Shown here: positions 7,186 to 10,864 of the stretch, in pieces | Numbering within the stretch: the stretch's first letter is position 1 | Layout: each line of letters opens with the position of its first letter | Origin: Adineta vaga | Lineage: Eukaryota; Animalia; Rotifera | Direction of reading: 5' to 3' | Assembly (NCBI GenBank): GCA_021613535.1 | Contig: CP075497.1 | Coordinates: forward strand, 4,154,001 to 4,218,000 | Length of the DNA stretch: 64,000 bases | Position numbers and translations under genes: made by a program | Notes under the pieces: model-generated | Told to the model about the DNA's origin: nothing | The model's database searches: none | What the model saw: the letters and a program-made list of their open reading frames with translations, nothing else

Positions 7186-8315
7186 GACGATACGACACTG
7201 CAGTTGTTCTCCTCTCGTTTTTACTTACCTACGATCGAGAAAGGAAACCAGTTTTACAATACGATCCGTCACAGCACTCAATTTCATGAACAAATATTTG
7301 CAACACATTCATATATAGACTTTTTTTCTCTATATTGAAGCCAATCTGATCCTAGTTGCTGTACGTTACGTTTGCAGTTTTATCATTCCGAAACATTCCT
7401 GTAAGAAAATGTCTAAAAATTTTTCCCACTAAATGAAAATTGTTTTTGATAATTTATTTATATACTCAATCGAGTACATAGCTCCTTTTCTTCTTGCATG
7501 CACTCTTTTTTTAGAGGAAAAAAAAATTAAGAATACGTGAGAGTTGCTCTACATTTTGTTACTGCGCTATACGATGCAATTATACTGTCGTCAGCTACTT
7601 TCTTTTTCTACAAGAATACGTCAACATTTTTTCTTTCTTCCCTTCGACTTCCTAAAAAGAAAATTTTAAAAATTGTTTTTCTCGTTTTATTTTACACTCT
7701 ATTTCATAGTGGTGATTTGAAGCAGTCATGCGAAACCTTATTTGACATTAGGCTATCCTCATTTTTGCGTCGCAACAGGTTAATGCTTTGTTTTTTCGTA
7801 CTTCTGTTTTAATGCGAAAATGAAATGAAAAGAGCAACAACAAATATTTTTTGTTATTGTTCTGTGTTTTATTAGTGACATTTTTTTTTCTCATTGAAAA
7901 CATAAATGACATGAATAACATTTTCAAATTCTTGTCGAAAGAAAAAATAATCTTATCGTATTATTTTATTTTACAGATTTAGAAAAGAAAAGAGTTAAAG
8001 AATGTTTTTTCTTTAATTGTCGTCATCAACTAACAAAATCACATTCGAACGAGCCAAAAGAAAGATTGTGGTTGATATAAACATATGCGTTATATAAGTG
8101 AGCATTCATCAAGAAAAACAGAACATTACTAAAGATTCTGCCATCAACATTATCATCAGTGCATTATCATTCTTAAACAACAACATCAACAACTACGTCA
8201 ACGAAGTTTGTGTGTGACGAAAGAAGACGTGACAAAAAAAAGCATTTAAGAAAAGAAAACAGAAAGAAAAATATCTGGTGTGATATATACTACTACTAGT
8301 TTCATTAACTCGGGT

Positions 8316-8588
8316 ATGTTTCATAGTGGAGAGGAGCACAATCGCATTGTCGAGCATCTTGACGAATTACAGCATTCATATGGATCAACAGCAACAACAG
8401 CAAATTCAACAACAAACACATTCGAACTTGGTCATATCACCTCATCTGATTTTGACTCGATCGGATTCGACCTCGAGTGTGATTTTGGACGACGAAATTC
8501 ATGGACAGCAAGTCCATCTACCTGCAACTCTGGTAGTGAACGGCAGTACTTCACTACGTTCGCTCCTGAAGACAAGTGGCCTATTTAA
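8316..8588 (+). CDS. 90-aa upstream ORF in the first coding exon of the bZIP gene
   Basis: ATG 8316 to TAA 8588 encodes MFHSGEEHNRIVEHLDELQHSYG...GRRNSWTASPST...FAPEDKWPI*. Codon usage resembles real genes in this window, unlike the overlapping +1 frame. Confidence 0.6.
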   Translation: MFHSGEEHNRIVEHLDELQHSYGSTATTANSTTNTFELGHITSSDFDSIGFDLECDFGRRNSWTASPSTCNSGSERQYFTTFAPEDKWPI

Positions 8589-8663
8589 CGAAGGTTTGTA
8601 AAATGATGAAAAGAGAAAAATATTTCCTCATAACTATACTTCTGTTTTTTCTCTCTTTCAGAT

Positions 8664-9747
8664 ATGGAATCGTCTGACAAAATAAATGAGTTCTTTGCAA
8701 ATGGTACTGAATTTACTCTTCATCGTCTTTTAAGTGATTTTGGTGTTAATGATATGAATATCGATATGAATGACTTAGTCAAATTCGATCCAATGAAATT
8801 ACTTGATACACGTTGTTTTAGTGAATTTGTAAGGATGATATTATTTTCTTTTCTTTTTATCTAAATTATTCATTTTCATTTCTAGTTACAATGTGATTCA
8901 TTCGAAGAAGTTAACACACAGACGGATATTCACTCAGATCACCAAGATAGTATTCCACCATCTGCAATAGCTTGTTCGTCAGACTCATTCTCCACACTTT
9001 GCCCACTATCATTAGAACTTCCAACTAAAGAAGAGTTCTGTTTTGATAACAATCAATTAAAAACTGAACCTGAACATCCATTGGTTTATACTGAATTAAA
9101 TTCACTTGATAATGTTGTCTTAACACCATCAACATCAACTGCTATGTCTCATGAATTTAACTTTGATCCTACTGCTTTAGCTGCTATTGAACATGATTAT
9201 GGTTATTTAGCACAACGAACAACTGTTGTTGATACACCATCACCATCACCAACAGTTTCTAAACGAACAGTAATGCGCGAAAGTCGTCGAACATCTTCTC
9301 GACTTCAATCTCGTGCTACATTAATTGATTTTAAAAAAATCTTAGAAGATGAATCATATTCATCACCCATGGTATCTCCAAATAGTTCGATATCATCGAG
9401 ACGAACAAAACGTTCACGACATATCAATCGTGCAACAGATATCGAAACTGAAGATGACTTATCCTATTATTTGGAAAGACGTCGAAAAAATAATGAAGCA
9501 TCAAAAATGTCACGTGCAGCACGAAAACAAAAATTTGGTAATATGGATTCTCGATGGTAAAAGAAAAAACTTAATAAATTTATTAAAAAATATTTTCTTT
9601 TTCTTATCTATTATTAGCTTTGAATATGAACGTGTCAATGCTGAACTTCGTTTGAAAATTGCCACACTCGAAGTTGTTACAGCGAATTTGAAAGATGGTC
9701 TTATTCATACATTTCAACGTAAAGGTGGTGTTACTACAAAATGTTAA
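8664..9747 (+). CDS. bZIP transcription factor (PAR/C-EBP-type basic region); frame extends upstream via intron 8594-8661 to ATG 8380
   Basis: Basic region YYLERRRKNNEASKMSRAARKQK and spliced zipper CFEYERVNAELRLKIATLEVVTANLKDGL. Introns after 8828 and 9557 preserve the frame. Confidence 0.88.
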
Positions 9748-9946
9748 TTATATACGTACACCTATGTGGCTATATTCTCTTTTTCTTCCCTCTATCGACT
9801 TTTCATTTGTATCTGTCAAATATTTCACCATATACATATTTTCTACACTTCAGTGAGCATCCTTTCACTTCCTTTTCCGAGTGATCGCTTTTTTTCGTGT
9901 TTATGTTTAGTCGAGAGGCAGAAAAATTGTATTCTGATAGTAGGCA

Positions 9947-9976
9947 ATATATATATACATATATATATATATATAT
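9947..9976. repeat. (TA)n microsatellite in the bZIP 3' region
   Basis: Interrupted atatatat run read directly from the sequence. Confidence 0.85.
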
Positions 9977-10492
9977 GAACATTTCTCCCTATGATACTAT
10001 CAGACTCACATGTATGTGTGCGTGTGTGTTGTTCTATTTTTATTTTGTATTGAAAAAATTGGAACAAAAGAGAAAAAAAACTCAAAAAAGTAGAAAAGTA
10101 GACAAAAAAAAGTGTTTTTTTTTGTTTCTTCTTTGTTTTTCTTGCTTTTCGTTTTTTTCTTCTAAACTCGATTTATCGAGAAAAAAAACAAACGATAAAA
10201 TATTTCTCTGTCTTTGCATTTGTGATATTGTTTCTTCGCTCTTTTGATATTGTCATTAACTGTTGTAGTTTTATTTTTTTTCTCACTACTATTTCAATGT
10301 GATCAGAGCAAGTATGATAAAGAGATATGTTATAATTTCTTCATCGAATATCACCAGGTGAAAAATCGATAAAATAAATCAAATATCTTTGAATATTCTT
10401 TTCTTTATGCTATTCATAATCTGTCATTTGGATGAAATAAACAAAAGCAGAATTGAAATATTTGAAAGAAAACATCGAAGTTTTTCTTTTAG

Positions 10493-10864
10493 ATGAGTTC
10501 TGTTGAAAAAGATATTATTCATGATCATATCTATTTATCGAATATTCCGATTGAAAAAGATTGTAATCAAGCAGAAGCATCTTCAGATACTCGACGACAA
10601 CGAATCATTCGAAAAAAATGCGATATTGAAACAGACGAAGATCGACAAGCTTATTTTCGACGACGTACATTAAACAATGCATCCTGTCGAATATCTCGTA
10701 TTCATCGTCAAGCAAAATTTGATTTAATGTTCAAGAAATGTGCTGAATATGACGATTTAAATAGGAAATTAATTCGACAAGAATTAATTTTATTTCAAGT
10801 TATTAATCAATTAAAAGAACATCTACGAACCTTAGTTTCAAACAATACCAAATACAATGAATGA
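10493..10864 (+). CDS. Divergent bZIP protein, probable tandem paralog
   Basis: DIETDEDRQAYFRRRTLNNASCRISRIHRQAKF aligns with DIETEDDLSYYLERRRKNNEASKMSRAARKQKF of the upstream gene, followed by a leucine heptad. An acceptor-like ttttag precedes the ATG. Confidence 0.8.
   Translation: MSSVEKDIIHDHIYLSNIPIEKDCNQAEASSDTRRQRIIRKKCDIETDEDRQAYFRRRTLNNASCRISRIHRQAKFDLMFKKCAEYDDLNRKLIRQELILFQVINQLKEHLRTLVSNNTKYNE

Follow-up and report, generated by a model that had tools for sequence, protein, structure and literature searches.

The bZIP locus and its gene model

We analyzed a 64,000-nucleotide stretch of the genome of the bdelloid rotifer Adineta vaga (GenBank assembly GCA_021613535.1, contig CP075497.1, positions 4,154,001 to 4,218,000 of the forward strand), referred to below as the window, whose numbering is used throughout. 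The window is AT-rich animal DNA with short introns. It contains a gene for a basic leucine zipper (bZIP) protein whose first exon is open in two reading frames: frame A, a long upstream open reading frame (uORF), and frame B, which lies at +1 relative to A (equivalently, A is the -1 frame of B) and in which the bZIP protein begins. The gene is organized as follows:

8316..8588 (+), frame A, the long uORF: 90 codons plus TAA (8586-8588), ending 5 nucleotides (nt) before the exon 1 donor
8380..8593 (+), frame B, first coding segment of the bZIP protein: from MDQQQ... to ...GLFNE, plus 1 nt
8594..8661 (+), intron 1: GT donor at 8594, AG acceptor at 8660-8661, phase 1 for frame B
8662..8828 (+), exon 2: holds ATG 8664, an internal methionine codon of the protein
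8886..9556 (+), exon 3: basic region at its end
9557-9617 (+), intron 3: between exons 3 and 4
9618..9747 (+), exon 4: leucine zipper, with the TAA stop at 9745-9747

On re-reading of the sequence, the frame opened by ATG 8316 (AUG-A in the mRNA) runs for 90 codons and ends in AAG TGG CCT ATT TAA, as described in the original prediction. Frame B starts at ATG 8380 (AUG-B) and is open up to 8593. The stop of A lies 207 nt downstream of AUG-B and the uORF is out of frame with the main open reading frame (ORF), a layout common to all relatives. The earlier observation that the +1 frame is continuous with the bZIP protein through intron 8594-8661 was borne out: frame B continues in frame across the intron into exon 2 (...FNE-D-MESSDK), and removal of the intron is seen in two spliced contigs from relatives (L017 and L040) and in the annotated protein P0036 (NCBI 'hypothetical protein I4U23_028552 [Adineta vaga]', 393 amino acids (aa)). 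P0036 starts at ATG 8380 and matches the model of exons 1-4 residue for residue. The two contigs are fully spliced mRNA copies of natural origin, which were used for the protein model; in these, frame B encodes continuous bZIP_2 proteins of 382 and 386 aa.

The natural full-length L017 protein matches the bZIP_2 domain (PF07716) with E = 7.6e-10 and 39 bits against a cut-off of 22.3. Its best relative of solved structure is NFIL3 (E = 7e-4). No ATF4 chain occurred among the solved-structure matches up to E = 1, which is a weak test of ATF4 orthology. Judged from these comparisons, the gene is a PAR/NFIL3-like bZIP transcription factor of A. vaga. Frame B encodes the true N-terminus of its protein. 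ATG 8664, previously taken for the bZIP start, is an internal methionine codon of the annotated 393-aa protein. The position given for it was correct, in that the stop of A lies 7 nt before ATG 8664 in the spliced message; L017 has the identical layout (TAA, 7 nt, ATG).

Conservation of the two-frame layout

For comparison, 35 loci were fetched and every complete one was examined for frames A and B. The A. vaga genome searched comprised 100.8 Mb in 6 contigs. Frame A is open from MF(H/Y)S to (K/R/Q)WPI-stop in approximately 27 distinct sequences, which derive from Adineta, Rotaria socialis, and both A. vaga ohnologs. In every complete locus, frame B extends without a stop from an ATG as far as the donor. 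A search with the frame-A peptide returned 12 clusters of homologous ORFs at full coverage, to which a profile search added a further 10, likewise at full coverage. Across these relatives, frame A varies from 86 to 117 codons in length, and all of its indels are multiples of three. The peptide contains conserved blocks at its start (MFHS..NR.V), middle (FEL and GFDFD), and end (TTF..EDKWPI). The RRNS and SP sites pointed out in the window's peptide are not conserved in the alignments. The frame offset and the ATT-TAA junction, in contrast, are kept among orthologs. The one-base assembly error that had been a concern is excluded, since more than 25 independent assemblies share the two-frame layout.

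The start of frame B is likewise maintained. Its ATG precedes a conserved THSN block in all relatives, at positions that vary (+31, +55, +58, +64, +82, and +91). Since stops occur in frame B upstream of this ATG in several species, frame B starts at that ATG. Codon 22 of frame A is TAT, GAT, or CAT, each of which preserves the ATG of B.

The layout is found in both ohnologs and in two bdelloid families. The ohnolog locus (L002) lies on another chromosome, with 68% nucleotide identity, and has the same two open frames; its frame A starts with ATGTTTCATAGTG and ends with TGG CCT ATT TAA, followed by 5 nt and then GT. In the frame-A tree, ohnolog-type copies fall outside the Adineta-Rotaria clade. 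Given its presence in both ohnologs and this position of the ohnolog-type copies, the layout is probably older than the ohnolog duplication and also older than the split between Adineta and Rotaria. The protein of Didymodactylos begins with MKTSGRFN, and its frame A may therefore have the same end.

Public annotation has handled these loci unevenly. Frame A is annotated as a stand-alone protein in A. ricciae (P0002) and R. socialis (P0017), with the uORF filed as a separate protein in loci L010 (A. ricciae GCA_905250095.1, 3001-4503) and L045 (R. socialis GCA_905332245.1). The bZIP models of A. ricciae and A. steineri begin in exon 2 and comprise 321-322 aa, and thereby lose the frame-B N-terminus. 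The present analysis corrects both the misfiled uORFs and the truncated bZIP models. One further locus carrying the frame-A motif with its stop lost (L042) was considered doubtful and not used.

Selection on the two frames

Substitution rates were obtained by parsimony on small trees, using exons 2-3 as the neutral yardstick. The same exons provide a baseline for the openness of shadow frames. Their -1 frame, which has the relation that A bears to B, contains 0.116 stops per codon, corresponding to a probability of 2.5e-4 that 67 codons are open; their +1 frame contains 0.05 stops per codon (P = 0.03). Exact redrawing of synonymous codons gave a probability that A is open, given the B protein, of 0.0029 for the window and 0.0002-0.03 for the relatives. 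The reciprocal probability that B is open, given the A protein, is 0.06-0.42 per lineage. On a 24-sequence tree, and assuming that a stop is no worse than an average missense change, approximately 16 stop-creating changes were expected in A and approximately 12 in B, and none is present in any extant sequence. As a control, the shadow frame of exon 3 acquires stops at the neutral rate. Stops accumulating in the 8316 frame, with selection on the MDQQQ frame alone, would have spoken against the original prediction; instead, no stops were gained and purifying selection acts on both frames.

The rates in the overlap were compared with those of exons 2-3 on one shared tree of 7 taxa:

Synonymous changes in exons 2-3: 1.56-1.76 per site
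Nonsynonymous changes in exons 2-3: 0.64 per site
Changes in the overlap that alter B but are silent in A: 0.56 of the synonymous rate (P = 1.4e-4)
Changes in the overlap that alter A but are silent in B: 0.53 of the synonymous rate (P = 1e-5)
Changes in the overlap that alter both frames: 0.41-0.52 of the synonymous rate

Selection on frame A extends beyond the overlap. The 20 codons that precede it show an excess of third-position changes in frame A, with a nonsynonymous-to-synonymous ratio (omega) for A of 0.43-0.56 (p = 0.0035-0.03), compared to an omega above 1.2 in the other two frames. Pairwise comparisons of frame B show the usual pattern of constraint, strongest at second positions, then first, then third. 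Since both frames have remained open and purifying selection acts on each of them, approximately 70 codons are dual-coding. By these measures, frame A is a conserved, stop-protected ORF under peptide-level constraint. Frame B is somewhat more constrained than A, for which the constraint is concentrated in the start, the end, and the openness of the frame. The tightest constraint falls at the end of the overlap:

8550..8593 (+), dual-coding block under the strongest constraint: frame A reads TTFxPEDKWPI-stop, frame B reads SLRSLLKTSGLFN

This block is almost invariant in every codon phase in all relatives, and its last 40 nt are near-frozen. The only sites within it that vary frequently are two positions silent in B; in the last 8 codons, 7 B-silent sites never vary.

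Codon usage does not separate the two frames. The original prediction held that frame A has the codon preferences of genuine genes, whereas B resembles a shadow frame. However, usage is gene-like in neither, with relative synonymous log scores of approximately 0 for A and -0.3 for B, compared to +0.59 for exon 3 and -0.6 for the third frame, and the order of A and B is reversed in two relatives. Moreover, B is the annotated protein and is under selection.

The mRNA leader

Upstream of AUG-A, the locus contains the following features:

7975..7976 (+), 3' splice acceptor: pyrimidine tract followed by cag/AT; putative trans-splice site, after which the mature leader would begin at 7977
8002..8016 (+), uORF1: 4 codons plus stop, approximately 25 nt past the acceptor
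8085..8132 (+), uORF2: 15 codons in the window
8133..8315 (+), AUG-free spacer: ends in the invariant CGGGT that precedes AUG-A

The acceptor and the AT that follows it are invariant in 13 Adineta and Rotaria loci, including the window. The mRNA contig L017 departs from conspecific genomic sequence (L018) in its first 8 nt, which lie precisely upstream of the acceptor, and seven of these eight nucleotides equal the end of the bdelloid spliced leader. The tail of this leader is present before GT in at least 44 exact copies in the A. vaga genome (for example C5:9884354-9925971, C2:8684671-8691981, and C6:4520544-4531668). Many of these copies occur in head-to-head pairs approximately 165 nt apart and in clusters, which are presumably arrays of spliced-leader RNA genes. 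As read from the contig, the mature mRNA of this close relative is shown to be trans-spliced to the spliced leader approximately 310 nt upstream of AUG-A. AUG-A lies within the mature mRNA, 64 nt upstream of AUG-B, both in the leader-tagged L017 and in the spliced L040; its inclusion in the mature mRNA of the window follows by homology.

Two short uORFs precede frame A. The ATG, place, and length of uORF1 are invariant in all 13 aligned Adineta and Rotaria leaders, and its residues vary. In 10 of these leaders, uORF2 has 3 codons (ATG-NNN-NNN-TAA); its ATG is retained in 12, being absent from L021 of the aligned set and also from L015 and L026. The spacer that follows extends for approximately 180-230 nt without an ATG in 29 of 30 loci. 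The exception is L019 (a contig from Logan SRR15442441), in which exon 3 is inverted and precedes exon 1, and in which an unrelated, ATG-rich leader is present; this contig is probably chimeric or rearranged. In the aligned leaders, CGGGTATG is invariant. The -3 position is a purine (G or A) at AUG-A everywhere, compared to C at AUG-B (+64).

Several other leader elements were observed. The interval between uORF1 and uORF2 (8017-8084; columns ~125-200 of alignment A6) shows conservation between Adineta and Rotaria; it includes a GTCGTAGTCGGCTAACG-like block followed by GAGCCAAA, and could be a reinitiation-promoting or structural element. An element of the form GTGTGTGACG...GACGTGAC at 8205-8235, containing TGACG half sites resembling the cyclic AMP response element, is kept in several Adineta relatives. 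A conserved TATATAAG-like element at 8091-8098 was considered as a TATA box. This reading was rejected because the leader-tagged mRNA contig includes these positions.

Interpretation of the two-frame exon

We consider that the locus probably encodes an ATF4-like multi-uORF leader, in which the last uORF is long, has a conserved peptide, and overlaps the main start out of frame. Ribosomes initiating at AUG-A would be carried beyond AUG-B and make no bZIP protein, which would be produced only by ribosomes that bypass AUG-A. Such bypass could result from leaky scanning. Alternatively, ribosomes that have translated the short uORFs could re-acquire initiator tRNA late, as in the delayed reinitiation of ATF4 and GCN4. 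The sequence of the frame-A peptide would matter, especially its invariant end (TTF..EDKWPI-stop), which possibly slows termination; alternatively, the peptide may act as a small disordered acidic peptide. In addition, as two exon junctions remain beyond the stop of A, termination there could make the mRNA a target of nonsense-mediated decay. This translational gate, in which AUG-A is either used or bypassed, is modeled on ATF4, ATF5, and GCN4. The original prediction had offered three options, namely a +1 frameshift, termination-reinitiation, and a peptide-dependent uORF. The last of these is supported, in the form of a conserved and stop-protected overlapping uORF. A shift, neither needed nor supported, is unlikely, and the ATG 8664 required for reinitiation is not conserved.

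A number of observations weigh against this explanation or limit its reach. That frame A is translated, and that the gene responds to stress, are predictions from sequence. The trans-splice site is demonstrated in a relative and extends to the A. vaga window by homology. The 15-codon length of uORF2 in the window results from a 1-nt insertion, and uORF2 is absent in some relatives. As the short uORFs are mostly missing in the ohnolog lineage, where the frame-B ATG is at +31, delayed reinitiation is not the whole story there. Slowing of B-silent sites is uneven in pairwise comparisons. Two omegas estimated within the region did not separate, given that sites silent in both frames are almost absent, and absolute rates relative to exons 2-3 were used in place of this estimate. 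The predicted disorder of the frame-A peptide says little about its function, and an invariant ATT-TAA-C is just as much to be expected of a shift site.

Alternative splice donors that would join frame A to exon 2 were also considered. These would need an xGT codon in frame A, and the only conserved candidates are AGT at codon 4 and a TGT in the middle, which either make weak donors or do not occur in all relatives.

Comparison with known systems

The arrangement most closely recalls the ATF4 and ATF5 leaders. These likewise belong to bZIP mRNAs and contain a very short uORF of 3-4 codons, then a spacer free of AUGs, and finally a uORF that opens before the main AUG, runs across it in another frame, and terminates within the coding region. 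There are several differences. The bZIP protein here is PAR/NFIL3-like rather than ATF4, and there are two short uORFs. The overlapping uORF of ATF4 (uORF2) has 59 codons and a shorter overlap, whereas the rotifer uORF has 86-117 codons and overlaps approximately 70 codons of the main ORF. The rotifer uORF also has a conserved peptide, spliced-leader trans-splicing adds to the leader, and stress control would apply by analogy only.

The locus also resembles uORFs with conserved peptides, such as those in the sucrose control of plant S1-group bZIP genes, the upstream conserved coding region of AZIN1, and the fungal arginine attenuator peptide. In common with these, the peptide is under purifying selection, conservation is strongest at the C-terminus beside the stop, and the gene encodes a transcription factor; plant conserved-peptide uORFs are biased to transcription-factor genes (PMC2075485). 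However, such uORFs usually end upstream of the main start, whereas the rotifer uORF overlaps it. Its conservation is also partly shared with the other frame, and ribosome stalling is only a possibility.

As in the dual-coding regions of eukaryotes (surveyed, for example, in PMC1868773), two frames of one mRNA are open and constrained across deep divergence. Here, in contrast, one product is most likely regulatory, and the overlap lies at the 5' end and depends on alternative initiation rather than alternative splicing. The frameshift genes for antizyme and prfB share with the locus a first ORF that ends at a stop, a downstream ORF in the +1 frame, and an invariant codon-stop junction. Unlike in those genes, the downstream frame of the rotifer gene possesses a start of its own and is already under selection before the junction, no clear stimulatory structure was found, and there is no evident need for a shift.

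Alternative explanations

The strongest competitor, which we regard as unlikely though far from negligible, is a dual-coding gene with two products, in which the product of frame A is a small acidic protein (86-117 aa) with an independent function, exerted in trans. The effect on bZIP translation would then be secondary, and the two accounts are compatible. Conservation is indeed spread along the whole frame-A peptide, omega for A is approximately 0.5 before and within the overlap, the frame is well over the length of typical regulatory uORFs, and gene predictors called it as a separate gene in two species. Nevertheless, the predicted structure of the peptide is disordered and without a fold (mean predicted local distance difference test score 58, predicted template modelling score 0.14), and no relative was found in Pfam or the Protein Atlas. 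The middle and end blocks of frame A coincide with conserved blocks of frame B, and conservation of A is therefore partly borrowed. In some pairs, moreover, the first positions of frame A in the overlap change almost as fast as silent sites.

A programmed +1 ribosomal frameshift at AUU-UAA-C, which would fuse the acidic frame-A peptide to the bZIP protein, seems improbable. As originally noted, dropping one T at ATT-TAA would yield ...KWPI-NEDMESSDK, with the junction peptide WPINEDMESSDK. The first ORF ends at a stop with the second in the +1 frame, TGG-CCT-ATT-TAA is invariant in approximately 27 sequences except for one silent CCC, and the base after the stop is C in most sequences. A C in this position makes a weak termination context. 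The acidic, DFD-rich stretch that we read in the frame-A alignments would suit an activation domain, and the chance of an open frame B, given the A protein, is not small.

However, the notion that frame A is the real coding frame and requires a +1 shift does not fit the evidence on frame B. Frame B has its own ATG everywhere, such that no shift is needed, and is the annotated protein. It is stop-protected and constrained at the amino-acid level upstream of the site, with changes silent in A and altering B at about half the synonymous rate. In two relatives, a T after the stop creates a tandem TAA-TAA in frame A. The invariance of the junction is fully explained by conservation of WPI-stop in A together with GLFN in B. 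No clear downstream stimulatory structure was found: the fold of L017 at 540-680 had z = -1.86, with 8 of 200 shuffles folding as well, an Rfam scan gave no match, and exon 2 has the highest synonymous rate with no slowing of silent sites. Likewise, no frame-A-like segment fused to any protein was found among 1.84 billion representatives. Were AUU-UAA-C nonetheless a working site, a prospect to which we attach little weight, it would be an animal +1 frameshift outside the antizyme family, with one mRNA giving three products (the A peptide, the B-bZIP protein, and an A-bZIP fusion).

Still less credible is termination-reinitiation, whereby ribosomes would finish A and restart at ATG 8664, 7 nt on, to make a shorter bZIP protein. 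The spacing is the same in the window and in mRNA contig L017, and the A. ricciae and A. steineri models begin at that methionine, the product thus matching the A. ricciae annotation. The ATG is missing, however, in the ohnolog (SESTDK), in L040 (KSDSFDK), and in all Rotaria proteins (DW/DV/DA-ESSDK). Reinitiation after approximately 90 codons is also generally inefficient, and this mechanism leaves the selection on the upstream part of frame B unexplained.

Finally, the idea that frame A is untranslated, open by accident or assembly error in an exon conserved as nucleotides (an RNA structure or DNA element), is close to refuted: although the similar slowing of all three substitution classes in the overlap (0.41-0.56) could be mimicked by nucleotide-level constraint, the frame has stayed open in approximately 27 sequences against the stop-creating changes expected, its start and stop are fixed, it shows frame-A periodicity before the overlap, its indels respect the codon triplet, and the layout recurs across assemblies.

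Significance and neighboring features

The locus provides a clean, anciently conserved candidate for translational control of the ATF4/GCN4 style in a different class of bZIP gene, in animals known to survive desiccation and radiation. Cases such as this, with demonstrable constraint on approximately 70 codons in two frames, are also rare in animals. In the library searched, no paper linked uORFs to gene control in bdelloids. In the available part of the desiccation and radiation tables for A. vaga (PMC10809525), two bZIP genes are induced; the identifiers FUN_028552 and FUN_014428, which were guessed by analogy with the NCBI locus tags of this gene, do not occur in that part.

Two features lie downstream of the gene. 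Runs of TA and TG microsatellites at 9940-10040 are likely within the 3' untranslated region. Just beyond, at 10493-10864 (+), is a single-exon ORF of 123 aa with a bZIP-like basic region (RRRTLNNASCRISR), a tandem paralog that gives a weak match to exon 3 (E = 2.5e-4). An equally long ORF is located 3' of the gene in A. ricciae (L010, 5207-5575) and in L011 (2838-3209).

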